A stretch of 63,689 bases of DNA, the filler included, from Guillardia theta CCMP2712 (taxonomy: Eukaryota; Protista; Cryptophyta): assembly GCF_000315625.1 (NCBI RefSeq). It is 5 parts of 5 records of this genome, joined end to end, with 100 filler letters (N's around TTAATTAATTAA, not from the genome) between each part and the next. Parts side by side here need not be neighbours in the genome. Positions count along the whole stretch, not along the records: positions 26,383 to 41,460 come from NW_005434658.1; 4 more parts are not named here. The stretch is one strand, 5' to 3'. This document shows, in pieces, positions 4,559 through 41,759 of the stretch. The translations under genes and the position numbers were made by a program. Position 1 is the stretch's first letter, and each line of letters opens with the position of its first letter. A model generated the notes under the pieces. The model made no database searches, had not been told where the DNA came from, and worked only from the letters and a program-made list of their open reading frames with translations.

Positions 4559-5763
4559 CGTACAAGGTAGGGGGGATGAAGGCAGGGGGACGAGATAACA
4601 GCGGAAGAGAATGCGACTCGGGAGCCGGGAGGACGGCAACCCCTACCCCTCTCTCTTCCCTATGCATGGGGGGTTACCCTTCTGCACCATCGGGATGTGC
4701 GAATTAACCCTTATTGAATCCACCCCTCGCCCCAGCCAGATAGACCACCCCTCCCTCTTTCTAGCGCTATCCAGGAGGATTGCCCTCTTGGGTTGAGGTG
4801 TCGGCCCTACCACCCATGCAGAGAGAGGGTAGTCAAGGTCGAAAGAAGGGGTACCACAAGGTACTTCGGCAAGGTCACAGCTGAAAAACGGTCTGCTTAC
4901 ACTGCTGGTCAGATCGGAGTTGTTATCTTGAACGCGGTCAGTACTAAGATGCCAGTGTAAGCTTGCAACGGCGACGACAGGCCGATGCTGCACAGTGACT
5001 GAGAGCCGAAGCCAGTCCGCTCATGCTCATGAAATGTCTCATACTGGAACACAAGCAGAGACACATGAGGCTGTTCCCCTTGCCACCTTACCTGGGTGAC
5101 GCATGCAAGGCCACGGTGAGTCAGTGATAACCTAGTCCCTCCTCTGTGATGCGGAGATAATCCAACAACTGAGCGATAGTGCACTTACGAGTGAACAGAT
5201 GCGCAATGAAGCTAGATTTGATTATGTACGTCAGCGCTCCTGCAACCCGCTTGCCGCGGCTTAAATGCCAATCCAGGCTGCTTATATGTCGATTCTAGTT
5301 GGTGCTCGTAGTAGCACAATGAGTAAAAATGTGTGCTGAACTGGTACCTAGCGTCATGCTTTCATCGTACTAATGCGCCATACGTACAATTTTACACATC
5401 TTGCCAGCGTACGCAACCGCTCACGACTGCTCGCATGGTGCTGCCATGTCCGTTACCAATGTAACGTCATGTGGCTGCAACAACATACTAACCACAAGCG
5501 CTTCCGCTTGCAGCAAGCAACTTGAATGATCCATCACCAGTAGCTCGAGACCAAAGATAGCAGGGTAGAGTTGCTTTTTTAATTGCATAAGGAACGAAAC
5601 GATTCAATAACAAATTGACCTAAGACAATGACAAATACACAACACACATGCAGGTACTCTTCACCTGCTATCCCTTGACTATACATAACCCTCCCCAAGT
5701 CTTTCAGATACTACACACCCTTCACGCGCGGCCTTCCTCCTTAGCCGACGCCGGCAGGCTTGA

Positions 5764-6876
5764 CTAGCTGTACAACCGCCCCGTGTAATGATATGAGTCC
5801 ACCGAGAAGTAGATGAAGCCCAGCACTATCCCTCCCCCAAACATCCCCGGCACGGCAAACATCGACTTCAGTGACAGCAGCGCGACCCCCGATAGCCCAT
5901 GCCCGCTGGTGCAGCCCGACGCAAGCCGGCTCCCGAAGATGGCGCAGAAGCCTCCTACGAACGCGTTCAGGTACTGCCTCATATCCTGGCAGTTCTTGCA
6001 GATAGCAAGAGGCTGGGAGGTATATGTCATGTACGCCGAGCTGCTCCCCAGGGTGGTATTGATCAGCAGGATAGCTGGGATCTGTAGGAAGCCGATGATC
6101 GCCCCCATAAGCTCTGGGGGGAGCGCCGTCTTCCAAGGCGTCGTCCCTACCGGCACCTCCTTCTCCCACGGGAAAAACACTTCGAGGATGACGATGAAGA
6201 TGGTCATGCAGACCTCGATCTTCGGTGACTTCATCTTCCCTGCCTTGAGGTACGGCTCGATCTTGGGCTGCACCACCCCATACAAGGCCGCGCCCGACAG
6301 GCCCCCGATGAGCGTCAGCCACGAGTAAGGGATGCCTGCTCCGACTTGTACCAGCACCATCCCTGGGCATGACCCTGACAGACACATGCCGCATCCTAGG
6401 ATGAAAGCTCCCAGAATGATCGGTATCAGCCCCTTGCACTGCAGTGTGCTCATGAACCCCTCGCGCGCCCTCTCAAAGTGCAAGGGGAAGATCAGCGACG
6501 CTCCCGCGATGCAGTATGCCGACCCCGCCGACGCTCCCAAGAACATCTTCAGCATGATCTCCCGCCTGAAGATAAACTGCTCCCTGATCATCAGCGGTAG
6601 CGTCACCTTCCCCAGATCCATCGCCGACCCGAAAACAAGGCCCATGAACATGGCTGCGAGGATGCCCTTGACCCATCGCGTCCTCCCTTCCCATGATTGG
6701 CTCTCGCTGTTGTTACCCGCTGCGAGCTCCTCTACGGCTACCTTGTACTGGCTGGGAAGCTTGGGGGAGCTGGTGCCATCCAATCCTTCGTTCTTCATGT
6801 CGGTGAAGTCGTCGACGGGAGTTGTGGTGTAGACGACATGGGGCTCTACCTTGACGGAGATAGCGGCTTCCGGCAT
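5764..6876 (-). CDS. YeeE/YedE-family transporter, copy 2, 370 aa, internally deleted (may be non-functional)
   Basis: Near-identical to copies 1 and 3 but lacks 54 nt (junction 6214/6215) and 126 nt (junction 5964/5965), both in frame. Confidence 0.75.
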   Translation of the reverse strand: MPEAAISVKVEPHVVYTTTPVDDFTDMKNEGLDGTSSPKLPSQYKVAVEELAAGNNSESQSWEGRTRWVKGILAAMFMGLVFGSAMDLGKVTLPLMIREQFIFRREIMLKMFLGASAGSAYCIAGASLIFPLHFERAREGFMSTLQCKGLIPIILGAFILGCGMCLSGSCPGMVLVQVGAGIPYSWLTLIGGLSGAALYGVVQPKIEPYLKAGKMKSPKIEVCMTIFIVILEVFFPWEKEVPVGTTPWKTALPPELMGAIIGFLQIPAILLINTTLGSSSAYMTYTSQPLAICKNCQDMRQYLNAFVGGFCAIFGSRLASGCTSGHGLSGVALLSLKSMFAVPGMFGGGIVLGFIYFSVDSYHYTGRLYS

Positions 6877-25985: not shown

Positions 25986-26505
25986 GTAAGAAATTCTCTT
26001 CGTCGATGGACTTGCTGTTAGTGTACTGCAAAGACAATAAGACGAGAAGTGGGAAAAAGAAGGAGAAAATAGGAGAAGAAGATAGAGAAGGAGAGAGCAG
26101 AGAGGAGAGAAAGGGAAACGATGATCATTGCGATAATTGAGTGAGGAAAGGAAAGTGACAAGGAGAGGGGGGAAGAGAGAAGGAAAGGGGAGGGGGAGGG
26201 AGGGGGGAAAGAGGGAGGGGGTGGGAGAGGCAAAACGAGGAGAGCGAGAGAGGGGGAGGGGAGAGGAGGAGGGAGGAGACGGNNNNNNNNNNNNNNNNNN
26301 NNNNNNNNNNNNNNNNNNNNNNNNNNTTAATTAATTAANNNNNNNNNNNNNNNNNNNNNNNNNNNNNNNNNNNNNNNNNNNNTTCCTCCTCCTGCACCTT
26401 CTCCTCCTGCACCACCTCCTCCTCCTGCACCTTCTCCTCCTGCACCTCCTCCTGCACCTCCCCATACTCCCCATTCCGGGGCTGACCAGCAGCAGTGGAG
26501 GACAG

Positions 26506-26731
26506 GTCAAGGAGAATCAGGACAGCACGCTCGCTGTTTCTCTCGCAGGCCATGGGGACGTGCTAGCTGTAATGGACGGGCACGGCGCTGCTGGAGCTCT
26601 GGTGAGCCAGTTCGTGGCGGAGACCCTCAAGGTGAGTAGAGGAGGAGGAGAAGGAGGAGCAGTGGATAGTGAGGACGAGGACGAGGACGAGGAGGACGAG
26701 GACGAGGACGAGGAGGACGAGGGAGTAGGAT

Positions 26732-26764
<33 letters not shown>

Positions 26765-28819
26765 AGAAGTATCTCGTGATGACGTTGTGGTTTGAACAGG
26801 ACAAGTTGCTGAAGGTGCTGCAAGAGGCTGGGCCCGTGCGGCAGGACGAGACTCTGACGGAGAAAGAGCGGAGAACGCTCAAGGAGAAAATAGCTGCAGC
26901 GTTCAAGGAGACAGATGTGGAGCTGAAAGCGGTAGGGGGAGGAAGAGGAGAGGAGGAGGGAGAGGAGGGAGAGAGAGGAGGGAGATAGGGAGGGAGGGAG
27001 GGGAGGCGGAGATGAGGAGGAGCAGTAGTAACAGAGGAGAGTAGGAGCAGGACGAAGGGAAGGGAGTAGTCCAGTAGGGGGGAAGTGGGGGAAGTGGAAG
27101 GAGGAGTGAGGGAAAGGGCCGGAGGAGGGGCAGGAAGGAGGAGGGGGAACGTCATGGTGCGGAAGCGAAAGTGATGGTTGTTCCTACAGGCGCTGGGAGA
27201 ATTTGTTCGTCTGGATTTCGATGGATCAACAGCTGTGAGCTCCTCCTCCTCCTCCTCCTCCCCTTGCTCCCCATTCTCTCTCCTCCTCCTCCTCCTCCTC
27301 CTCCTCCTCCTCCTCCTCCTCCTCCTCCTCCTCCTCCTCCTCCTCCTCCTGCTTTTTCCTCTCCTCCCCCCCTCCTCCCACTGCTTGCTGACACGATCTC
27401 TCAGTGCGTCGTCATCCGTCGGGGCCGATCGCTCATCACGGCGTCGTTGGGCGACAGCTCGTCGGTGCTGGGAGGGAGGAGAGGAGAAGTCCTGAAGCTC
27501 TCCCGCGAGCACGTGCCCGCCGACGACGAGGAGAGGAGCAGGATCGAGCGAGCAGGAGGCATGGTAGCTGCGTTCCCGGACGAGCCTCCACCAGAGGTCA
27601 GGGAGGAGGAGGAGGGGGGGGAGGGGAGGGGGAGGAGAGGACAGAAAGGAGGAGGGCGAGGGTGAAACGAGGGGAGCGAACGAGACAAGTCGTCTTGGGA
27701 GTGAGGAGGAGGCAGTGGATGTAATTGGGAGGGGGGAAGGGGAGGGGAGGGGGAGGGGGAGGAGGAGGAGGAGGGAGGGGATACTGAGAGGAAGAGCAGG
27801 TGACGGGAAAGGGGCGAGTGTTCGTAGCAGGAGAGATGTATCCTGGACTCGCAGTCTCCCGCGCGTTCGGCGATCTGGTGGCAAAGACAGTAGGAGTGAC
27901 AGCCGACGCGGAAGTCACGTTCACAGACGTTGAGGACAAGCATGCGGTGAGAGAGGAGGGAGGGAGGAAGAGGACGCAGGACGCAGGACGCAGCAGGCCT
28001 GAGAGAAGCGAATAGAGCAGAGCAGAGCAGAGCAGAGCAGAGCAGAGCAGAGCAGAGCAGAGCAGAGCAGAGCAGAGCAGAGCAGATTTCTTGTCTTCCC
28101 CTCCTCTCCTCCTCACGATCATCTCACGTGCTCTCAGGTTGTCATCATCGCGTCTGATGGCGTCTGGGATGTGACGACCAGCGAGGAGGCGGTGGCGATT
28201 TGTCTGTCCTACCTCGACAAGAAGGTACATCCTCCTCCTCCTCCTCCTCCTCCTCCTCCTCCTCCTCCTCCTCCTCCTCCTCCTCCTCCTCCTCCTCATC
28301 ATCNNNNNNNNNNNNNNNNNNNNNNNNNNNNNNNNNNNNNNNNNNNNNNNNNNNNNNNNNNNNNNNNNNNNNNNNNNNNNNNNNNNNNNNNNNNNNNNNN
28401 NNNGTTCCCCTGCTCCTCCTCCTCCTCCTCCTCCTCCTACACTAGCCCACTCCCTTTCGTGTGCTTTCCAATCACTTTCTTCCAGGATGCAGTTTTAGCG
28501 GCAGCAGAGTTGGTGGAAGGCGCGAGAGCACAGGTGAGCAAGGGAGGAGAGGGAAGGTGGGAAAGGGGGATGGGGGTGGGGAGGAGGAGGAAGTGGAAGG
28601 GGAGGGGAGGGAGAGGAGAAGCGAGGGAGGGAGAGCAGTCAAAGGAGGAGAATAGTGACTCTTGGTTCAGTGGGAAAATTTCCAGGCTGAGGCGATCGAG
28701 CAAGGGGTAAGGGAGGAGGAGGAGGAGGAGGAGGAGGAGGATAGCAGCTAACAGGACGGCAGAGCAACATCGAATCTTTCCCCATCGATGACATTTCAGC
28801 AGTCGTTGCGTTTTTGTGA
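26506..28819 (+). CDS. Protein phosphatase 2C (PPM family), many exons, 5' end in gap
   Basis: ENQD, VMDGHG, DGSTA, ASLGDS, LSREH, LAVSRAFGD, IASDGVWD and DDIS motifs in order, across GT-AG introns. Confidence 0.9.
28015..28085. repeat. (AGAGC)n intronic pentamer array
   Basis: About 14 perfect units. Confidence 0.9.
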
Positions 28820-29485
28820 CGTTGCGAAATCATGAAATGCTGACTTGACTTGACTTGTTGTCTTTCTTGTTTTCACCTGTCTTTTGATTCTTTCTAGTGC
28901 AATCAGAATAAATTTTTAATGAGAACCTGCAACATGAACTCTGAATGATCAAGAGCGACCAAAACAACAGGCGGCCGTGAAAAATTTCAGCGGACTATCG
29001 TAGGAAGGAAAACACAACAAACACAAGGGGGAGCACATACGAATGATCAATGGAGGTGTGTTGATGAATCATAGTGTGCGTGAATGTCGTAACTAGAGTC
29101 CCTGACGGAAGTTTAGGAAAGCAAACGCAACTTGAACAGCAACAACCATCACGACCACAACCACGTTCGTCATCGTCATCATCATCATCATCGTCATCAT
29201 CATAATTTCCATAATTGTCATCATCACCACCACCACCACCACCATCTCAATCAACAACAACAAAAACATCGTCATCATCATCATTTCATCACTATCACCT
29301 GAACTTGTGATGAGTCGAGTTAAAAGACTCATGCCCGTGGTGCTGATGTGAGCTGCTCTTGCTCAGGCAGGGCACCTGAGATAAGAGTGAGGACATAGAA
29401 GTGAAGGTGATGATGGCGAGCAGGAGGAGGACATGGGGGGAGCAGGGGGAGGCAGGAGAGAGCAGGAGCAGGAGCAGGGGGGGGG

Positions 29486-29530
<45 letters not shown>

Positions 29531-29537
29531 GGGGGGG

Positions 29538-29637
<100 letters not shown>

Positions 29638-29689
29638 TGGGAAATGAGAGCAGATGAGACGAGGAGGAAACAGGGGTTGTAAGATCTGA

Positions 29690-30061
29690 CCAGTGTTCTG
29701 AAAGGTCTCTTGGGCCCATGCAATCTCGTGTGGTTCTTGGCCTTGATGAAGAGAGATGAAGGAATAGTCTTGTCCTCCGAAAGCTGCGCGTTCTAGTTAC
29801 TCCTCCTCCTCCTCCTCCTCCTCCTCCTCCTCCTCTCACCTCAAACTCTCCCTCAAGTCTTCCTGCTGGGATTCCCTTGTCAATAAGATCAACTTGGAAC
29901 TGGTTCAGTCCGTCCTCCGCATCCTTCAAGCTCACTGTCCCACACCTGCTCTCCTTGTTACCTCAAGGCCATCACCAACACAACCAACATCTTCTCCTCC
30001 ACCACCACCACCACCACCTCCTCCTCCTCCTCCTCCTCCTCCTCCTCCTCCTCATCCACCA

Positions 30062-30092
<31 letters not shown>

Positions 30093-32355
30093 ATCATCAT
30101 CATCATCATCGCATTCATCTCGAATGCTAAGTCACCCGATAAGATCGTCAGAGTTGGCAACGTCATAGTCCATGACAGAGAGGCTGATCTGCTCAAAGCT
30201 GCTTCAAGTCAGAAACGTTCCTCTCCTCGACCTTCCCCCTCCCCCTCCCGTCCCTCCCCCGTCTCTCTCCCTCTTCTGTTCACTCCCCTTGACTCCCCTC
30301 CTCCCTTCCTTCTCCCCCTCTCCTCCTCTGTTCTCCCTCGCTCACCGCAGGTCTTGTCTGCTGAATCCCACCAGCCTCAGCTCCGGCAGTCCCGACGGGG
30401 ACCAGTCGGGGTTCAGCGTTCCCAGCTTCACTTCCGTGTACCTTGGCTGCATGACGGAGTCGCCTTGGAACAGGATGTACGGGTCCGACTTTCCCCCCAC
30501 GTCGCTGGCCTGCAAGTCAAAACCTTGGAGGCTCGTGAACTTGATCTTCCAGGTCTGCAGAGGAGGCAGGTCCTCCCCGTGCCGCAGGTGCAGGTGGATC
30601 CGCTCCGAGCTCGTCCTCTGCTGCGTGAAGCCCTTCACTCCCCGCAGCGGCCACCAGTGAGGACGCGGAGGCCTCAGCTGAAGGTTCAGAACGGCGGCCA
30701 CGGGCTTGTGGTCGGAGGAAGAGACCTCGTTGCCGCTCCACAAGTCGCTGCACTGGGACATCAGCGTGTCGAAACTTCGCCAGAGGATGCGGTCGCAGTA
30801 GGCGGGGGAGCGTTCGGAGATGTACTGGATTCCCTTCTTTCTCTCCACCTTGAACGTAGGAGGATGCGTTATCTGTCCCTCGTGGAACCCGAGGAACGAC
30901 TCCCGCTGCTCTCTCGCCTTGATGAGCTGGTCGTAGGACAGCAGCTCCGCAAACTGCTTCTCCTGCACCATCTTCTCGATCGTGTCAAACAGCTCCTTGG
31001 GCGGGGTTTTGGAGTTGGCTCCTTCCCCGAACACCTCGGGGTTAAAGTCGAGCCTGTAGTTCAGGTCCCCCATCCACGTCACGTGGTGGAACTGGCTGAA
31101 GAGGTCGCAGTTGGAGTATCGCCCGAGCTTCAGGCCTCCCGCGATCTCCGAGTAGTCCTCGTTCCTCCTCTTCGTCTGGTTCTGGTGGGCGGCGAGGTGC
31201 GAGGCAACGAACGCCATCGATGTATCCCACACCCACAGCCCGATCCCGACTCCTCCCTTGTTGGCTACCACGTGCCCCAGTCCGCATGCTTCCCCGTCGC
31301 TATGCAGCCCAAGGATCCCAGCCACAACGTCAAGCCGCGCCCACACCCCCATCCTCATCTGCCCCAGCGACTCGTCCTTGACTAAGGTGAAACTGTCGCC
31401 AAGGCACTTGGAGATGCTCTCCATGAAGTCGTCATGGCATGCCAGCTGCCCGCGGGGCTTGTACTCGCACTCTTGCGTGCCAACTACCACCAGCCCTGAT
31501 CGGTCCACCTTCTCCCGCGGGAGCCAACTTGTCAAGTCGGCGGAAGGAACGGCATTCCCCACATTCCAAGTGCCAGCCAGCACGTTGATGTTGGTTGGGG
31601 AGCACGTGGTTTTGACGATCAGCAGCTGCGCGAAGATCTTGCAGGGTAGAAAATCTCCATGGGGGTCCTTGAGAGGAAGTTTTATCACCTCTACCTGCCC
31701 CAGCCCCTCCGCCTCCATGCTCTGCAGGTCCACAGTCTGCAAGTTGTCCAGACTGATGCGCGCAGTTCCGTAGCACACGGACTGCCCGATCCTCCTCGTC
31801 GTCTTCACAGTCATCTCGATCGCAGTCTCGTCGTTGATCTCGAAGGAAGCCACATGGTCGAAGTTCAGCACAGTCCCTGACATCACCTTCGTCTTCGCTT
31901 TCCTCTGACCCATCACCAGCTTCACCAGCGCGTTTGACAAGGTCCCTTCAGACAGAGCGACGGACTGGATCTTGATAGCGACTCTCCTCCTCACGTAGGT
32001 GGCAGAGTATTCCTTGGCCTTCTCCTTGGGGCTCATCCGCGCGGCATTCAGCCGGCTTCTCGCCTTGAGCTCCTTCACCTCGTTGGAGAGCGATTTAACG
32101 ATCGAATCGAACTCGGCCACATTCGCCCGAAGCTCGGCGACCTGAGACCTCAGCGAGAGGATCTCCCCTTCCCTTCCTAGCTCGATTGCCTTGGTTCCCG
32201 ACAAGTCGTGTGCGTTCACGTGGATCGCCATCTCGTGCGGTCCAATCTTTGACTCCAAATTTTCCGGCCACATTGCGTCCGCCCCCAACGCATCCTTCGG
32301 AGTGCTGATGGGCCAGGAGCGGAACAGGAGCTCCGGGGCCTTGGGAAGCTCGCTG
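29690..32355 (-). CDS. Inositol polyphosphate 5-phosphatase flanked by C2 domains; ends uncertain
   Basis: GTWNVG, GTQEC, KGGVG, SHLAAH, WMGDLNYR, PPTFK, PAYCDRILW, SDHKPV; downstream C2 (GKSDPYI...TLNPDW...VMDYD...DDLI) and an upstream C2-like region. Confidence 0.9.
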
Positions 32356-35334
32356 NNNNNNNNNNNNNNNNNNNNNNNNNNNNNNNNNNNNNNNNNNNNN
32401 NNNNNNNNNNNNNNNNNNNNNNNNNNNNNNNNNNNNNNNNNNNNNNNNNNNNNNNAAAAACTACTCAGCTCACTCTCTTCAGCTCCGCCTGCCCCCACAC
32501 GATTGGTACCCCACCTCTCCCTGCTCCCTCACGATGAGACCTGCCCTTCTGCCTGCCTCCTAGGGTTAACTGGTTTCTTCCTCATTCGCCATTATCCCTC
32601 CTCTCTCATGATCGCCCATAGGACTCGTTCTGCCTCTTCCCGATCTGACGAGCCCTCGCGCCTCTCATACCAGCTCGCCGCTCCTCCCTTGGCCTTGTCT
32701 CTTCACTTCTTGCATGTTGACTCACCTCTCTCCTCCCTCTCCTCCTCCTCCCTCTCCTCCTCCTCCCTCTCCTCCCTCTCCTCCTCCTGTCTCTCCTCCC
32801 CTCCTTCGCTCCAGCGTCGCTGCATGTAACTACTCGCAACTTGAACCCTATCCCCCCCACCCACCCCTGTCCTATCCATACCTGTCCCCTCCTTTGTACC
32901 CCACAGTGCCCATTCTGGACCCCACCCCCTATACCAACAGTGACCGACAAAACCACCCTATTGTAAAACTTGAAACTACCCACCCCCTCAAATACCTGTT
33001 CGACCGATTCTGTACCCACCAGTACCCTCCAGCCAAACTTTCGGACCCCAAGAGATGTTCACCCCTTCTTTGCTCTTTGTGGACCCACCCTTTCCCCCAC
33101 ATCCATCCCCTCCCTACCCTTCAACGTTTCATAAAGATTAACTTACTTGAGGACCCCACCCCACCTTCTACAGTCTCCTCACCCTAACCCCACCCCTCTA
33201 CTCCCCTCTTCTTTTCTCCTCCGTCTGTCAGCCGCTCACCGTTGTTTGACTCTTTTTTTTGTTACTCGGACCCCCCGGACCCCCCCTCCCCACCGCCGGG
33301 ACCCCCCAGACCCCTCGCCCCCCCCCGGACCGTCACGGTATGCCAACCCCGTACGCAATTACTAGTAACTATTTGACTACCGTGCACTGCCTCCCCTGCC
33401 TTTACTCAAACTTTTTAAAAGGACCGTAGTTTGATGGCCCCCGGCGGCCCCGGGCCCGGAACGGCGCCCCCCCCCCCCGGCCGGGTGACCGTACCCCGGC
33501 CCCGGCGGCGGCCCGGCCGGGGCCACGACGGCCGCCGCCCCGACGGCACATAGCGTTGACATTTTGCTTTTTCTGCTTTGGGCTGTATGTTTTTCCGTGA
33601 GGGGGTTGTTCTGCTTTCTATGTGGATTGGGGGGTGGCGTGTTTGAGGATTTGAAACAGGGTCCAAATTTCAGGTTTATAACTCTGATGTTGTTTTCCAA
33701 TAAGATATTTTAAACTGTATTGTGGAATGGTTGAGTATAAACAGAGAAGTAGGGCTGCACCCCAGAAGTTGCAGTGAGATCATGGGGTAGTCGACTAACT
33801 AATTTGTAGAGCCTTCTTATGGTACAATTTTATAAACAAGTTTGAACGACCTCTCTACACGCCATGAGCCTCCCCTTGTTTCGGGGCACGTCGCACCGCT
33901 CTGTACTGCCCTAACCATGGCTCGCAAACAGCGAGCCCGCGGCAGCGTGTGCAGACATCAGATGTTCACCGAACCTCCTCATGGGAAATTCCTGAGGTGT
34001 AGAGATGATGATCCTTGAGGAGTGCTTCGTACAGTGCGTGGATCTCACGAAAAATCGTTTGGTGAGCGAAGAGCATCAATAATACAAGTGAAAATCACCA
34101 TCACAGGGATACGTTGCAATCGAAACCGGGTTGTGAAATACCCTAAGCTATCTGCGATGCATGACAGGGAAACTGAGTTGGAGTAGATGGATGGAGATTA
34201 CACACAAGACGACAGGGAATCATCATCCGACGGTGACTGGATTGTTCAAAAGCCGTACAGTCACCAGTGAGCTCAAGAACACATGTCTTCACGATGATGG
34301 CTGATTTGCTCGCAAGAAATACAGTGCATTTTAGCAGTGAGCTGCTCGATTGCTTGAAACCACGATGATCCACAGCACTATCGAATGATAACAAGCAAGT
34401 CCAGTGGTTCGTGAAGGATTCTTCATCCGGTTTTCAAGGATGTGTTGGAACGATGAAACATGTTGCAAATCACCAAGGTCTATGCCATTTGATCACATGA
34501 TGCATCATCTAACTATTACTGGTGTGAACTTGCATCAGATCGTGTGTCCATCAATGAGCCGCTGCCAAGCAAATGATACGGTCACAGCAAACACGAGCAC
34601 TTTGAAGATGCTGATATTCCAGGCCGTTGAAGATGCTGATATTCCAGGCCGATTTGGCAAATCAAAATGGCACACTGACAATCATGATGACTTAACTAAG
34701 TTGAGTAAATATATGACAGTGATCCGATCCCAGACCATCTGGGTCGCAACCGTCACGGAGTCCAGGCGCACAGCGGCCCTCATCGGATCGGACGCAGTCC
34801 GGCCCGATGACCAGTCCGATCAACCGATTTGGATTGAGGGCCTCGGCAGTGCGGCCGGGCCGCGCCCCCCGGCGGGCTCATTTCAGTTTTACTGCCAGAA
34901 CTTCGGAACTTGTGACTCGGCACTGACCGTTGAAACCCACGGGCGGGCCGCCACGGTGACCGCGAAGAAGGTAGTACTAGGTTGACCGTGACCGTTAGGA
35001 CCTCAGTGGCGGCCGCCGGGGCCGGCAGCCGGCGGGCGGCCCGGGCCACCGCGGAACTCACTGAGTCAGGCTGGCACTGAAGCCTCCAGGCTGTACCGAC
35101 AGCCGTTGCGGTTATTAGTACGAGTCACGTGCCGGGGGGGGCACCGTAAACCGCCGCAAACTCCAAAATTAGCATCGAAACCCAAAAAGAGTCTAAAAAT
35201 ACCACCCCGCGGTTCCCTAGTAATGACCAGTCTATTTGATGATGGAGGCAAGTGCAGGAGCACGGCACGTAAGACACGCGGCATAGAGCTAGCATCCCTC
35301 CCTTGCTCTTGCTTGACCAGAACACTCTTAGTCT

Positions 35335-35535
35335 ACCTCCTCCTCCTCGTCCTCCTCCTTCATACTCCTCCTCCTCCTTCATCCTTCATAATCCTCCTCC
35401 TCCTCCTCCTCTTTCATAATCCTCCTCCTCCTCCTCCTTCATACTCCTCCTCCTCCTCCTTCATAATCCTCCTCCTTCATACTCCTCCTCCTCCTCCTTC
35501 ATAATCCTCCTCCTCCTCCTTCATAATCCTCCTCC
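35335..35535. repeat. Composite (CCT)n-TCATA(A/C)T repeat in the probable 5'UTR intron; length variant at 39645-39810
   Basis: Visible units; upstream GT donor (GTAAG/GTGAG) and TCTCAG acceptor conserved in both copies. Confidence 0.7.
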
Positions 35536-35614
35536 TTCTCCTTGCTCTCGCACCTTCTTGTCTTGTTGCTCCGCGCTGAGCTTGTCTCAGGTTGTGAATT
35601 GAAGACGCTCAACC

Positions 35615-38289
35615 ATGACTGTGCGTCATCGCTACGGATACATCGGCGTCTTCGGGGACGAGATTGATACGTACGCAAAGGAAGCAAGCGAGCAGGAGCA
35701 TGTGGACATGCCTCACACTGCTCCCTACCACATGACCTTAATCGCCAAATTTGAAATCCAGCAGCTGGTACTAGAGAATCGCATCAGCCTGGAGGGTCTG
35801 GTGGAGGAAGCGCAACAGTTGGAATCAAGATCCATCTACCCGCTGGGGGTCGGCGGGGATCCCAAGGGAGTCTGCTGGGTGGTCATGGTGTGGAACGCCG
35901 GCAACATCTTCAGGAAGAAACTTGGCCTGCCTTGCAAGCAGTTCCACATCACTCTCAGCAAAGTCGATGATCACAATGTTGACAAGGGAGTGCGATCACT
36001 TAGAGACGAGGGGTTTACAGCAAGACTGGATTCAAGTCAGATGGATCACCTGGTCGTCTCCTGCAACCTCGGCGGCGAGTCCTTGCTCGCCTCCTGCTAC
36101 GCGCGGGAAATGTGCGCCAGGTTCCCTGAGGTAGGAAAGGGCTGGATCCGACTCGGAGACTGTGCTCGGCAGGAAGGAGCTAGCAAGCTTGCGATGCTAG
36201 CGTATGCTCGGAGCCTGCTGTGTCCCCAGGAGAGCGCGAGGCTCGGGGACTACTGCGCCAAGAAGCTCTTGCAGTGCTCTCTTGAGACGGGGTGGGGATG
36301 CTTGTTCGGAGACAACGAGTATGAGCAGATCCCCGACGAGCTGAGAAGCCACCTCCTCTCTCCCTGGCCACGGTCGCTGCGGGAGACGGCCATGCGCATC
36401 TACGAGAGCAACGCTCCTCTCCTTGTCAGCACTCCTCGCATACACCTGCAGGTCCCGCTGGTCAACGTAGGGAGGGCCAAGGCCGAGGCAGGTACAGGAA
36501 GCTTGCTCTTGCTCGTGACTCCATTGACGGCCTGGCAGAGCTCTTCTCTCTCCCCCGCTTCTTCAGCTGGGTCGTCCCTTACTTCCTAGCTGGCATGTCC
36601 ACACCGCGTTGCGAGGCTGACGTCGTTGCCTTGAGCTCCCCGCACGTCGGCGTGCGCCATGTGGTGACGCTGACCGAAGAGGAGCCGCTTCCGGAGGAGT
36701 GGTTCCAGGGCAAGACCGTCTCGCATACTCACCTGCCGATCAGCAACTACCGAGCTCCTTCCATCGAGCAAGTCGACTTCTTCCTCAGGCTCCTCAACGA
36801 CCCGACCAAGACGCCGCTGCTCGTGCACTGCGGGGGTGGCAAGGGTCGAGCTGGGACGTTGCTTGCATGCTACCTTGCCGTCTACGGATGCCAGCCCCCT
36901 GCGACTCAAGATTGGTCTCAACCCGCCATGTCAGCCGGGGAGGCCGTCGCCATGATCAGGCAGCTTCGGCCAGGAAGCATCGAGACGGAGGAGCAGGAGA
37001 AGTTCGTCCACACCTTTGTGAGCGCAGTGTGGAGGAGGCAGTCGGCGCTGGCCGAGCTGCCAGAGGAGCCCCAGGGGATCTCGCTGGAGGTGGAGGGGGC
37101 AGTGGACGAGAACGCAGACCTGGTTATCTTGTGCGGCCTCCCTGGCTCAGGGAAGTCACACGTGGCGAGGATGATGGCGCTGCGAGACGAGCGATGGCTG
37201 GTGGTGTCTCAGGACGAGGCTCGATCCCGCGACGCGTGCGAGCAAGAGGTGTCGAGGCCCGGCAAGCACGGCAAGGTCATCCTTGATCGCTGCAACCCTG
37301 ACCGGGAGGACCGCCGGCGCTGGCTGGCGCTGGCGCAGTGGGCGAGGAAGCCGATCTGTGTGCACTTTGACTACGAGCAACAGCTGTGCGTCGCTAGAGC
37401 ACAGCAGCGGATTGACCATCCCACCCTCACCCCCGGACGTCGCGTGCTGACTGCGATCGAGGCGATGGGGAGGAAGATGGAAGCGCCTGGTCTTGACGAG
37501 GGGTTCGTGGGGGTCTGCCGCGTGCGGTCCTTGGATGCCGCCAACGAACTGATAGGGCGGCTGACGCCGATGCGGATCTGCAAGTTCGTGAGGACGGGGC
37601 ACCTGATCAATCTCGGAGCAGCGACGCCCGACGACATCCTGCTGAAGCTGCCGAGCTCGGGGACAGACGTTGTCATCACCGAGAAGGTGGACGGAGCGAA
37701 CCTGGGCTTTTCCCTCTCCAACGAGAGGACTATCCTTGTGCAGAACCGTTCCCACTACATCAACGCTGCTACCCACGCTCAGTTCCGCCCTCTCTCCGAC
37801 TGGGTGGAGGACCATAGGGAAGGCCTGTACCGCGTCCTCGATCGCGATCCCAGCTTCCCCGAGAGGTACATCCTCTACGGGGAGTGGCTTGTGGCTACCC
37901 ACTCCATCCCCTACACGCGGCTGCCCGATCGCTTCCTGGCCTTCGACCTCTACGACCGCAGCAGCAGGAGCTGGGCGGACCGAGACTCTCTCGCGCTGCT
38001 GCTGGAAGGGACGGGGATCCACATGGTGCCTGTGCTGTACCGGGGGCAGCGACCGAGCGAGAGCCGCCTGCGGGAGATGGTCCATTCGCCCTCCAGCTTC
38101 TACGACGGGCCGGTGGAGGGGATCTACGTGAAGGAGGAGGAGAACGGCCGCGTGCTGAGCAGAGGGAAGATCGTTCGCGCGGACTTCACGGCAGGGATAA
38201 GCGAGCACTGGGAGAGAGCGCCGTTGAGGAAGAACGGGATCGTCCGGGAAGGGGAGGAGGAGGACGGCGAGGAGGAGCTCGGACGATGA
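35615..38289 (+). CDS. Multidomain RNA repair enzyme: 2H phosphoesterase + TPR-like + Cys-based phosphatase + P-loop polynucleotide kinase + ATP-dependent RNA ligase (875 aa; intron 36492-36538)
   Basis: HMTL and HITL (2H); HCGGGKGR (CX5R); GLPGSGKS, SQDE, ILDRCN (kinase); TEKVDG, QNRS, YGEW, FDLYD, EGIY, GKIV (ligase motifs I-V); the 47-nt GT-AG intron joins the two ORFs in frame. Confidence 0.9.
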
Positions 38290-38519
38290 TGGAGAAGGGA
38301 GGGAGGGGAGGGAGGGAGGGGAGGGAGGGAGGGAGGGGAGGGAGGGAGAGGGAGGGAGGGAGAGGGAGGGAGAGGGAGGGAGGGAGAGGGAAGGAGGGAG
38401 AGGGAGGTAGGGAGAGGGAGGGAGAGGAGAGATGATTTCAATGTGATTGAATGAAGTCTTCTGCACCTTGACTGATCTCAGAGTCTGCTGCTCACTCACT
38501 CCCAAGGCTTCAGCCCCGT

Positions 38520-38900
38520 CTTATACCAGCAGAGCACCAGCGGCGCTCAACCTGACCCTCACTGCTAGAGCAAGAGCTCACCTTGCTCGACCCGCTCAGG
38601 ATCACTGGCGGCAGCGAGCCTGTCGACCCTCAGGCTGCCGCCAGCGACGCTGCCGACTTGCCTGCCGGATCGACAGACGGGGGGGGGGTCGAGGGTGCCC
38701 ACCAGCGTGACTGCGCGTGCAGTGGCAGCACTACCGGCATACCAGCAGAGGTGCCAGTCATGGGCGGGATTGGTGGGAGGAGCGTCGGATCAGCAACGAG
38801 ACTCGCCAGATGCCTTCGCGCGATCGCGAGGCCGACGGCAAGCAGCAGCAGCAGAGGAAACAACATCAGGCAGTCACAACTCCAAGGGGCTCTACTAGGC
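38520..38900 (-). CDS. Small hypothetical spliced protein with a hydrophobic segment
   Basis: MLFPLLLLLAVGLAIARRH followed by short GT-AG introns. Confidence 0.25.
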
Positions 38901-39886
38901 AGAGAGCGTCATGCTGCTACTCTACATGGAACTTCTCAGGCGCGCAGGCTCGTTGGGTACGAGAGTCCCGCCGTGCTGGGAAGGGAAGGGGATCAACTGA
39001 CTCCCGATGCGTCGCTGCTTCATCCTTGAAGGATCTGATCTTTCTCTGGAACAGCCCCCGCTCGAGGCTTGCAGCCAAAGAGCCCTTGAGGCCAGTCCGC
39101 TGGCTTCTCCTGCAGTATGGGTAGGCAAACATGCATACAAGTCGCGGCGGCCGTGTCACCGGGCTCAGTTTACCGTGAAATCGGCACTCAGTGCCTGTTG
39201 ACTCAAAACCCACGGGCCGCCGCGCCGCGCAGCACCAGGTTGATGCGACGTTACTGACCGTTGACCGGCCGGGCCGGCACCGGCCGCGCCGCCGTGGGAC
39301 TGGCACTGAAGCCTCCAGGCTGTACCGACAGCCGTTGCGGTTATTAGTACGAGTCACGTGCCGGGGGGGGGCACCGTCAACTGCCGCAAACTCCAAAATT
39401 AGCATCGAAACCCAAAAAGAGTCTAAAAATACCACCCCGCGGTTCCCTAGTAATGACCAGTCTATTTGATGATGGAGGCAAGTGCAGGAGCACGGCACGT
39501 GAGACACNNNNNNNNNNNNNNNNNNNNNNNNNNNNNNNNNNNNNNNNNNNNNNNNNNNNNNNNNNNNNNNNNNNNNNNNNNNNNNNNNNNNNNNNNNNNN
39601 NNNNNNNCTCCCTTGCTCTTGCTTGACCAGTACACTCTTAGTCTACCTCCTCCTCCTCGTCTTCCTCCTACATACTCCTCCTCCTCCTTCATCCTTCATA
39701 ATCCTCCTCCTCCTCCTCCTCTTTCATAATCCTCCTCCTCCTCCTCCTTCATACTCCTCCTCCTCCTCCTTCATAATCCTCCTCCTCCTCCTTCATAATC
39801 CTCCTCCTTCTCCTTGCTCTCGCACCTTCTTGTCTTGTTGCTCCGCGCTGAGCTTGTCTCAGGTTGTGAATTGAAGACGCTCAACC

Positions 39887-41440
39887 ATGACTGTGCGTCA
39901 TCGCTACGGATACATCGGCGTCTTCGGGGACGAGATTGATACGTACGCAAAGGAAGCAAGCGAGCAGGAGCATGTGGACATGCCTCACACTGCTCCCTAC
40001 CACATGACCTTAATCGCCAAATTTGAAATCCAGCAGCTGGTACTAGAGAATCGCATCAGCCTGGAGGGTCTGGTGGAGGAAGCGCAACAGTTGGAATCAA
40101 GATCCATCTACCCGCTGGGGGTCGGCGGGGATCCCAAGGGAGTCTGCTGGGTGGTCATGGTGTGGAACGCCGGCAACATCTTCAGGAAGAAACTTGGCCT
40201 GCCTTGCAAGCAGTTCCACATCACTCTCAGCAAAGTCGANNNNNNNNNNNNNNNNNNNNNNNNNNNNNNNNNNNNNNNNNNNNNNNNNNNNNNNNNNNNN
40301 NNNNNNNNNNNNNNNNNNNNNNNNNNNNNNNNNNNNNNNATCACTTAGAGACGAGGGGTTTACAGCAAGACTGGATTCAAGTCAGATGGATCACCTGGTC
40401 GTCTCCTGCAACCTCGGCGGCGAGTCCTTGCTCGCCTCCTGCTACGCGCGGGAAATGTGCGCCAGGTTCCCTGAGGTAGGAAAGGGCTGGATCCGACTCG
40501 GAGACTGTGCTCGGCAGGAAGGAGCTAGCAAGCTTGCGATGCTAGCGTATGCTCGGAGCCTGCTGTGTCCCCAGGAGAGCGCGAGGCTCGGGGACTACTG
40601 CGCCAAGAAGCTCTTGCAGTGCTCTCTTGAGACGGGTTGGGGATGCTTGTTCGGAGACAACGAGTATGAGCAGATCCCCGACGAGCTGAGAAGCCACCTC
40701 CTCTCTCCGTGGCCACGGTCGCTGCGGGAGAAGGCCATGCGCATCTACGAGAGCAACGCTCCTCTCCTTGTCAGCACTCCTCGCATACACCTGCAGGTCC
40801 CGCTGGTCAACGTAGGGAGGGCCAAGGCCGAGGCAGGTACAGGAAGCTTGCTCTTGCTCGTGACTCCATTGACGGCCTGGCAGAGCTCTTCTCTCTCCCC
40901 CGCTTCTTCAGCTGGGTCGTCCCTTACTTCCTAGCTGGCATGTCCACACCGCGGTGCGAGGCTGACGTCGTTGCCTTGAGCTCCCCGCACGTCGGCGTGC
41001 GCCATGTGGTGACGCTGACCGAAGAGGAGCCGCTTCCGGAGGAGTGGTTCCAGGGCAAGACCGTCTCGCATACTCACCTGCCGATCAGCAACTACCGAGC
41101 TCCTTCCATCGAGCAAGTCGACTTCTTCCTCAGGCTCCTCAACGACCCGACCAAGACGCCGCTGCTCGTGCACTGCGGGGGTGGCAAGGGTCGAGCTGGG
41201 ACGATGCTTGCATGTTACCTTGCAGTCTACGGATGCCAGCCCCCTGCGACTCAAGATTGGTCTCAACCCGCCATGTCAGCCGGGGAGGCCGTCGCTATGA
41301 TCAGGCAGCTTCGGCCAGGAAGCATCGAGACGGAGGAGCAGGAGAAGTTCGTCCACACCTTTGTGAGCGCAGTGTGGAGGAGGCAGTCGGCGCTGGCCGA
41401 GCTGCCAGAGGAGCCCCAGGGATCTCGCTGGAGGGGAGGG
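39887..41440 (+). CDS. Tandem duplicate of the RNA repair gene (2H + TPR-like + phosphatase visible), cut by contig end
   Basis: Near-identical to 35615-37090 with the same intron; sequence degrades just before the gap at 41461. Confidence 0.8.
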
Positions 41441-41759
41441 GCATGACGTTATAGCCTACCNNNNNNNNNNNNNNNNNNNNNNNNNNNNNNNNNNNNNNNN
41501 NNNNTTAATTAATTAANNNNNNNNNNNNNNNNNNNNNNNNNNNNNNNNNNNNNNNNNNNNAATGTCGTGCTCCTGGAGGAGGGAGGGGGGAGGGGGGGGG
41601 GGGGGGGGAGGGAGGGAGGGAGGGAGGGAGGGGAGGGAGGGAGGGAGGGAGGGAGAGAGGGAGGGGAGGGGAGGGGAGGGAGGGGAGGGAGGGGAGGGAG
41701 GGAGGGAGGGAGGGAGGGAGGGAGGAGGATACCCGAAACTTTCTTGCAAGCTTTTCATG

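Follow-up and report, generated by a model that had tools for sequence, protein, structure and literature searches.

A spliced cryptophyte gene for a predicted Swiss Army Knife RNA-repair protein shares its intron with bdelloid rotifer relatives

The closest described system to the gene analysed here is the Swiss Army Knife (SAK) family of RNA-repair proteins, which Burroughs and Aravind reportedly defined computationally (NAR, 2016). For its individual modules, the only experimentally characterised close relatives are two free-standing kinases of Mucorales, RazKIN and MciKIN, which are GTP-preferring RNA 5'-OH kinases, with MciKIN able to complement yeast tRNA splicing at its kinase step (PMC11571804). 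We evaluated a window of 63,689 nucleotides (nt; filler included) from the cryptophyte Guillardia theta CCMP2712, and within it a piece at 26,383-41,460 that comes from NW_005434658.1 (positions count along the whole window), where a plus-strand gene at 35615-38289 encodes a protein that by every sequence-level test is a SAK family member. Because that family is already known from computational work and has Pfam models of its own, the protein is not a new kind of system, and the novelty claimed for it in an earlier reading of this DNA (hereafter the original prediction) was overstated. We hold it very likely that this is an expressed nuclear cryptophyte gene which, once spliced, encodes a SAK heal-and-seal enzyme with the repair chemistry predicted below, and that the gene has moved between distant eukaryotes.

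The list of open reading frames (ORFs) for this piece holds two on the plus strand, in different frames, at 35615-36589 (324 amino acids, aa) and 36595-38289 (564 aa). Taking out 47 nt with GT..AG ends at 36492-36538 joins them into a coding sequence of 2628 nt and a protein of 875 aa with no internal stops, the intron falling in phase 1 such that the G of a Glu codon closes exon 1 and AG opens exon 2. The resulting gene model is:

35615..38289, plus strand: SAK gene copy 1, ATG to TGA, 875 codons once spliced (from ORFs, splice, homologue alignment and contigs)
35615..36491, plus strand: exon 1, aa 1-292 and the first base of Glu293
36492..36538, plus strand: intron, 47 nt, GT..AG, phase 1, within the TPR-phosphatase linker, its position and phase matched in bdelloid rotifer orthologues
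36539..38289, plus strand: exon 2, aa 293-875 and the stop codon

Evidence for this splice came from assembled sequencing runs and from homologues. A 1430-nt contig of run X3 and one contig of run X9, which belong to different studies, both skip exactly 47 nt, joining 36486 to 36534 as assembled, a cut that can be moved by 5 to give GT..AG ends at 36491/36539, while run X2, which is DNA-like, has a 2374-nt contig that reads through the intron site without a break. Since the joined form occurs in X3 and X9 (their RNA nature being an automated guess) and is absent from X2, as expected of a spliced transcript, we take the splice to be real. Further, 12 full-length homologues align gaplessly over the junction and with no large gaps over their full length, and the start of the phosphatase domain (N-terminal strand FSLPRFFSWVVPYFLAG and conserved segment FSLPRFFSWVVPYFLAGMSTPR) is encoded ahead of the ATG that opens the second ORF and enters the reading frame only if the transcript is spliced. 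We also considered whether the intron is normally kept and two separate proteins are made, a 2H-TPR protein (324 aa) and a phosphatase-kinase-ligase protein (564 aa), given that each ORF is open with its own ATG, that prokaryote-style gene calls on rotifer contigs split the gene likewise, and that an unspliced X9 contig exists (36463-36563). However, the depth of that contig is about one eighth of the spliced form (531.7 vs 4050), X3 and X9 contain mostly the spliced form, and the transcript-like contig of a relative 85% identical to this protein is one continuous ORF. Seeing the spliced form dominate and the first phosphatase strand precede the second ATG, we rejected the two-protein reading, to which we give next to no chance. 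The gene is expressed, with one intron spliced and an 875-aa product, which bears out the original prediction that the two ORFs form one protein after removal of the 47 nt. In transcripts that keep the intron, as in the X9 form, the frame would end at 36589 and yield the 324-aa 2H-TPR protein.

Domains were called by Pfam and NCBIfam profile searches, motif conservation was read from the protein aligned to its 120 best homologues, and structure models were graded by predicted local distance difference test (pLDDT). Together these place the following modules and catalytic motifs along the gene:

35636..35974, plus strand: 2H-SAK phosphoesterase (aa 8-120), PF22547, E 2e-25, profile positions 1-124 of 124
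35729-35737 and 35945-35953, plus strand: HxT motifs of the 2H-SAK domain, H39-M-T41 and H111-I-T113 (motif alignment)
36014..36409, plus strand: TPR helical domain (aa 134-265; TPR core aa 136-226), model pLDDT >90, fold match and TPR profiles
36553..37008, plus strand: PTP-SAK cysteine phosphatase (aa 298-449), PF22784, E 1e-62 over the whole profile, and DUSP23, E 1e-22
36829-36831 (C390) to 36847-36849 (R396), plus strand: HCGGGKGR active site of the phosphatase (motif alignment)
37099..37578, plus strand: P-loop polynucleotide-kinase-like domain (aa ~480-639), AAA_33 (PF13671), E 2e-12, and RazKIN, E 4e-20
37135-37158 and 37213-37215, plus strand: kinase P-loop GLPGSGKS and Asp518 (motif alignment)
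37564..38211, plus strand: ATP-dependent RNA ligase nucleotidyltransferase domain (aa ~635-850), PF09414, E 1e-35, and fold matches
37684-37686, plus strand: ligase motif I lysine K675, with motifs III, IIIa, IV and V also present

Two of these profiles are dedicated to the family, PF22547 being titled 'Swiss Army Knife, 2H phosphoesterase domain' and PF22784 'Swiss Army Knife protein, DSP-PTPase phosphatase domain', and NCBIfam adds just weak polynucleotide-kinase matches. With PF09414 and AAA_33 matching as well, the original prediction is upheld both in its five-module layout and in relating the protein to 'Swiss army knife' fusions. The catalytic residues are invariant or nearly so across the 121 aligned sequences: both HxT motifs (H39xT41 and H111xT113) are kept in >90% of homologues, HCGGGKGR (C390X5R396) is invariant in 120/120 sequences, and G492LPGSGKS499, D518, EK675VDGAN and ligase motifs III-V are invariant in the alignment, the ligase motifs after K675 reading GE741W, FD762, E819GxYVK824 and RGK836xVR. 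All of the motifs named earlier from the sequence, from the HxT pair through CX5R and Walker-A to the ligase series from KxDG to motif V, are thus in place.

The N-terminal modules were evaluated with an AlphaFold2 model of aa 1-292 (mean pLDDT 90), which has a compact alpha/beta domain at residues 1-125 with both HxT motifs in strands, followed by a helix stack. Residues 136-226 superpose on the TPR domain 3ma5 with Z 11.6 and a root-mean-square deviation (rmsd) of 1.5 A (88/90 3ma5 residues aligned), a Z below the caution line of ~13 for helical repeats, with the low rmsd and full coverage in favour. Among 47 family members, TPR_14 matches 20 and TPR_2 matches 11, and the canonical 2H profile LigT_PEase matches 14 weakly (best E 6e-4); fold searches with the N-terminal model gave only TPR proteins (Foldseek, VIA), the TPR part dominating the 2H+TPR query. 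The 'TPR-like helix pair' seen in the original prediction is therefore TPR in nature but not a pair, as residues 136-226 hold about three repeats. No signal or transit extension was found ahead of the 2H domain, which begins at residue 8. The module order is 2H, TPR, cysteine phosphatase, P-loop kinase, ligase, for which five modules is a fair count.

Compared with named SAK members, the algal protein is colinear over its full length, with the five modules, their order and their catalytic motifs alike, and Agaricomycete members share 52-59% identity with it over the phosphatase-kinase-ligase part. It differs from these in its cryptophyte rather than fungal host, in an intron that is not in four Agaricomycete genes, and in grouping in a clade with bdelloid rotifers.

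We then compared the module domains with CHARACTERISED enzymes by sequence and fold searches of PDB. The closest solved relative of the phosphatase is human DUSP23 (2IMG/4ERC, E 1e-22), with which the PTP-SAK domain has in common the HCX5R loop and the C-terminal 'RPGSIET' motif, whereas DUSP23 is a ~150-aa protein phosphatase that stands alone and the algal domain is embedded in an RNA-repair fusion. For the kinase, 144 residues align with Rhizopus RazKIN (9D8A, E 4e-20), the mammalian PNKP kinase matching more weakly (E 2e-6), and the P-loop, catalytic Asp, DRCN motif and lid arginines of RazKIN are all kept; RazKIN and MciKIN are again free-standing (~170 aa), the algal kinase being a fusion module. 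The ligase domain matched nothing credible in PDB by sequence, whether as a single sequence or as a 43-sequence profile. Its model (pLDDT 84) gave its best fold match to NgrRnl of Naegleria gruberi (Z 16.8 over 192 residues, rmsd 3.4), followed by T4 Rnl2 (Z 16.0), TbREL1 (Z 15.1), Rnl3 (Z 13.9) and Rnl1 (Z 13.7), with Trl1-LIG structures at Z 11.3-11.9. In fold, then, the modelled ligase appears nearest the Rnl5/Rnl2 class, NgrRnl and Rnl2 being tied and Trl1 clearly farther.

Even these nearest classes differ from the algal ligase in layout. NgrRnl (Rnl5), T4 Rnl2 and TbREL1 align over ~190 residues with motifs I, III, IIIa, IV and V in common at 14-17% identity. The Rnl2 family has a C-terminal domain of its own, whereas just 36 residues follow motif V in the algal protein, so that it has no Rnl2-type C-terminal domain, and TIGR02307 reaches 12.9 bits where the cut-off is 197. 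The NgrRnl match covers only its residues 135-339, and the segment upstream is an OB-like domain in Rnl5 but the kinase in the alga.

Among whole repair enzymes, Trl1 and AtRNL are alike in carrying ligase, P-loop 5'-OH kinase and 2H domains on a single chain, and in the breaks expected as substrate (2',3'-cyclic phosphate and 5'-OH). However, the order in Trl1 is LIG-KIN-CPD, and the algal 2H-TPR-PTP-KIN-LIG is the reverse, with a TPR domain and a cysteine phosphatase added. No Trl1 Pfam domain matched the protein, nor did an RtcB domain in Pfam or NCBIfam at E <= 1. With the reversed order, a ligase scoring Z 11.9 against Trl1 vs 16.8/16.0 against NgrRnl/Rnl2, and no RtcB domain, the proposal that this system is distinct from Trl1 and RtcB held, and profile and structure searches of the kind that had been suggested as a check support the modules and place the ligase fold nearest NgrRnl/Rnl2 rather than Trl1. 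The bacterial Pnkp (with Hen1) and T4 Pnkp + Rnl systems follow a like logic of 5' kinase, 3' dephosphorylation to a diol and ATP-dependent ligase, but the phosphoesterase of Pnkp is a metallophosphoesterase or HAD domain, for which the algal counterpart is a 2H domain plus a cysteine phosphatase; the NCBIfam bacter_Pnkp model TIGR04075 matches the kinase part alone, with 22 bits where the cut-off is 750.

Shorter kinase-ligase proteins of ~380-400 aa (AAA_33 + PF09414; P0320, P0322, P0325, P0342 and others), with 39-59% identity in the ligase part, are common in other assemblies, and the ESM Atlas holds a similar kinase-ligase cluster that is mostly viral. These proteins may possibly represent the two-module core of the SAK architecture. 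Phages were considered as a source and set aside as distant kin, the phage kinase-ligase cluster of the Atlas scoring 0.79, which is below threshold, and tblastn returning only ligase-domain matches of 25-32% in jumbo and other phages.

Taken as a set, the modules would fit a complete heal-and-seal route for broken RNA that bears 2',3'-cyclic-phosphate and 5'-OH ends. The 2H domain would open the cyclic phosphate to a phosphomonoester, which the DUSP23-like cysteine phosphatase would take off to leave a 2',3'-diol; the kinase, being closely related to the RNA 5'-OH kinase of Mucorales, would phosphorylate the 5'-OH; and the Rnl5/Rnl2-like ligase, adenylylated on K675, would seal 3'-OH to 5'-PO4, giving a clean phosphodiester for which Tpt1 would not be needed. 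The TPR domain would act as a docking module that probably recruits a partner or substrate complex. It is the extra phosphatase that predicts a junction without 2'-PO4, and in this the logic would be nearer to T4 and bacterial Pnkp than to Trl1.

The phosphatase step is where the same protein could work by another chemistry. Under such a scheme, the cysteine phosphatase would act on RNA 5'-tri/diphosphates (like BVP and PIR1/DUSP11), on protein or on a small molecule, and the 2H domain alone would heal the 3' end, where a 2'-PO4 would stay behind as it does in the Trl1 pathway. Solved structures nearest to the PTP domain are indeed those of protein or atypical dual-specificity phosphatases such as DUSP23, and RNA 2'/3'-phosphomonoesterase activity is not known to be established for any cysteine phosphatase. 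Yet the PTP domain is invariantly fused between 2H-TPR and kinase-ligase in all full-length homologues, and the ligase fold is nearest to Rnl5/Rnl2, enzymes that join 3'-OH/5'-PO4 ends, and farther from the 2'-PO4-dependent Trl1 ligase. We judge this other chemistry unlikely, a minority view that nonetheless deserves to be kept in mind.

Several points weigh against the complete heal-and-seal reading in a cryptophyte. The substrate assigned to the PTP domain is a guess, and those cysteine phosphatases known to target RNA work on 5' triphosphate or diphosphate ends. At ~115 aa, the 2H domain is unusually short. The guanine-reading Ser146 of RazKIN aligns with Ala in the algal kinase, so that either ATP or GTP may be the phosphate donor. 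The raw RNA-seq run X24 gave 9 reads only, which hold no splice information and indicate low expression there, and the host assignment runs through a neighbouring ORF that spans a 100-N scaffold gap. Finally, the literature searched contained no biochemical or experimental study of any SAK protein, in agreement with the original prediction, which knew of none on these fusions.

That neighbouring gene is nevertheless informative on the host:

30342-32498, minus strand: inositol polyphosphate 5-phosphatase with C2 domain, ORF of at least 670 aa, intronless, crosses the 100-N gap

Its best match is in the cryptophyte Hanusia phi (78% identity over 99% of the query), then Rhodomonas (43%), the next cryptophyte relatives lying at 43-46% identity, and the interval from 32456 to 39507 is gap-free. 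On this similarity the host is assigned to the Guillardia/Hanusia group of cryptophytes, in keeping with the alga originally proposed. The SAK gene resembles this neighbour in third-position GC content (GC3; 0.78 vs 0.81) and in relative synonymous codon usage (r 0.90), with no compositional sign of recent transfer in GC3 or codon usage.

A homologue search with the phosphatase-kinase-ligase part returned 767 homologues, of which the best 120 were used for identities and distribution; full-length homologues carry the same Pfam set (PF22547, PF22784, PF13671, PF09414). The closest is P0001 (883 aa, 85% identity), from a 2913-nt transcript-like contig of the Joint Genome Institute with one continuous ORF and GC3 0.77, whose host is probably another cryptophyte. 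Next in identity, at 68-71%, are ~20 proteins of bdelloid rotifers (Adineta, Rotaria, Didymodactylos) and other assemblies, and the remainder of the best 120 are Agaricomycete proteins at 52-59%. Beyond the cryptophyte pair, the bdelloids and the Agaricomycetes, which together make up these best 120, the only further full-length copy seen was a 963-codon single-frame ORF in Phytophthora cinnamomi (JAFJYM010000093.1, L009:2030-4921), which aligns to residues 25-862 at 41% identity and carries HxT, HxS, HCGGGKGR, GIPGSGKS and EKVDGAN, and with them all SAK modules. The public annotation at that locus is a 306-aa 'ATP dependent DNA ligase' covering just the 3' end of the ORF, so that its gene model looks truncated.

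Some database entries of the rotifer clade also seem incomplete. Many entries of ~577 aa (P0005, P0007, P0016, P0017 and others) are without 2H-TPR only because gene callers stopped at the shared intron, and at L002:5044-7737 a 2H-SAK ORF (5044-5952) lies directly upstream of a 578-aa ORF. In Adineta vaga P0018, 12 ligase residues after AQFR (~residues 721-731) that all other homologues keep are missing, possibly through a mispredicted second intron or a frameshift. In the jellyfish Rhopilema esculentum, a stand-alone ligase-domain gene with one intron (L010:3992-5210) shares 39-45% identity with the SAK ligase domain, and the 4 kb upstream of it contain no further SAK module.

To place the algal gene among these relatives, a tree was built from 32 rows and 864 columns, with the Phytophthora ORF as an outgroup on a long branch, such that the root is tentative. 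The algal protein and P0001 form a clade (100/100) whose sister group is the rotifer clade (95/93); support for the two combined is 100/100, and neither is nested in the other. Agaricomycetes make up the opposite side (89/69), branching roughly as in the species tree. The algal and rotifer genes also share their intron, which occurs at the same nucleotide position and phase in four genomes, in the Glu codon before [LMI]FSLPR[FY]F, with lengths of 47 nt in the alga, 55 nt in the Adineta vaga gene at CP075495.1:10734641-10740331, 1172 nt in Rotaria and 54 nt in L002. It is absent from the Coprinopsis, Jaapia and Trametes genes (which are intronless) and from the Tulasnella gene (whose one intron lies elsewhere, at residue 737), and the Phytophthora ORF is uninterrupted at this site. 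The rotifer SAK genes are host-like in composition (GC3 0.08-0.16 in Adineta and Rotaria) and sit in conserved synteny in three bdelloid contigs, with the following gene downstream:

Adineta vaga L003:4451-5691: Abhydrolase_2-like multi-exon gene
Rotaria L004:5830-6809: Abhydrolase_2-like multi-exon gene
L002:10035-13217: Abhydrolase_2-like multi-exon gene, duplicated

Because this gene is common to the Adineta and Rotaria loci, L002 is a bdelloid-type contig.

It is from the clade with bdelloid genes, marked by the shared intron, that we infer movement of the gene between distant eukaryotes. The simplest reading of these sequences would be one intron gain in an ancestor of the cryptophyte and bdelloid genes, then passage between them or into both from a third source. 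Lateral acquisition had been proposed before on the ground that the gene is intron-poor in an intron-dense region; the transfer itself finds support in the bdelloid sister clade and shared intron, but that reason carries little weight, as intron density varies across the region, with the neighbouring ORF of at least 670 aa uninterrupted and the PP2C gene in short exons, and codon usage matches between the SAK gene and its neighbour.

Had the domain linker offered a proto-splice site at which introns were inserted twice, independently, the intron would carry no information on transfer. Every copy has an AG|A/G-like exon context, the linker shows poor conservation and the intron sequences are unrelated, all as such insertions would have it. 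However, position and phase are equal to the nucleotide in four genomes, none of 5 genes outside the cryptophyte-bdelloid clade has an intron there, and the lineages that share it are also sister clades (100/100), which makes two insertions improbable. We consider slightly less probable still, and highly doubtful, that the protein is a vertically inherited housekeeping ligase for tRNA splicing or the unfolded protein response, rather than a laterally moved conflict or stress repair enzyme. Such a role could draw on a composition that is fully host-like and on a kinase nearest to the Mucorales enzyme that complements tRNA splicing in yeast (PMC11571804). It sits poorly with a distribution that, in the best 120 of 767 homologues, covers only the cryptophyte pair, bdelloids and Agaricomycetes (plus the divergent Phytophthora ORF), with ~70% identity between alga and animals for SAK where the neighbouring gene has just 43-46% to another cryptophyte, with the intron common to alga and rotifers, and with a tree at odds with organismal relationships.

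In bdelloids, the fungal pathogen Rotiferophthora is reported to cause strong induction of foreign RNA-ligase genes, PF09414 ones included, for which the authors of that work propose a role in ribotoxin repair (PMC11258130). A more specific scenario that fits this reported induction of acquired RNA ligases under fungal attack (PMC11258130) is that one intron-bearing gene passed directly between an alga-like eukaryote and a bdelloid ancestor, its intron surviving in both, and that it serves both as a single-polypeptide defence that repairs ribotoxin-cut RNA. We offer this tentatively, as one possibility that may well not be the right one.

The wider locus contains a second copy of the gene. The piece is 58% GC with many (CCT)n, (GGA)n and (GCAGGA)n tracts, and its remaining features are:

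26500-28750, plus strand: PP2C phosphatase gene, short exons with long (CCT)n/(GGA)n tracts between them, Ns at 28304-28403
35071..39299, plus strand: first unit of a ~4.23-kb tandem duplication (gene and flanks)
39300-41460 (piece end), plus strand: second unit of the ~4.23-kb tandem duplication
39887..41460, plus strand: SAK gene copy 2, cut by the piece end, N gap at 40240-40339, 47-nt intron at 40837-40883

As an example of the PP2C exons, 27408-27569 corresponds to Pfam PP2C positions 106-159. Copy 2 is 99% identical to copy 1, differing by T258K and L400M over the assembled part. X2 contains both of its variants, 36387 C>A and 36859 T>A, and X9 contains the 36859 variant at ~9% depth; being seen in independent runs, both versions must exist, and the two copies are either tandem paralogues or alleles placed in tandem. 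The final ~20 bases of copy 2 shift the frame, probably through poor contig-end sequence. Around copy 1, a 5' CCT/TCATAATCC-type low-complexity repeat lies in the 5' untranslated region (35290-35560), the X3 contig beginning at least 136 nt before 35580, and a low-complexity (GGGAGGGA)n tract follows immediately 3' of the stop codon (38290-38430).

New in these observations are the bdelloid sister relation (~70% identity), the shared intron and the second tandem copy. As predicted from their modules, SAK proteins would hold a whole RNA break-repair pathway in one chain, and an intact, expressed gene in a culturable alga, with its splice verified and its catalytic residues mapped, provides a usable entry point for SAK biochemistry. 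The shared intron, not found in fungal or oomycete relatives, is a fairly clean marker of eukaryote-to-eukaryote transfer, and it would tie this algal gene to the foreign RNA ligases that bdelloids reportedly switch on under fungal attack (PMC11258130).

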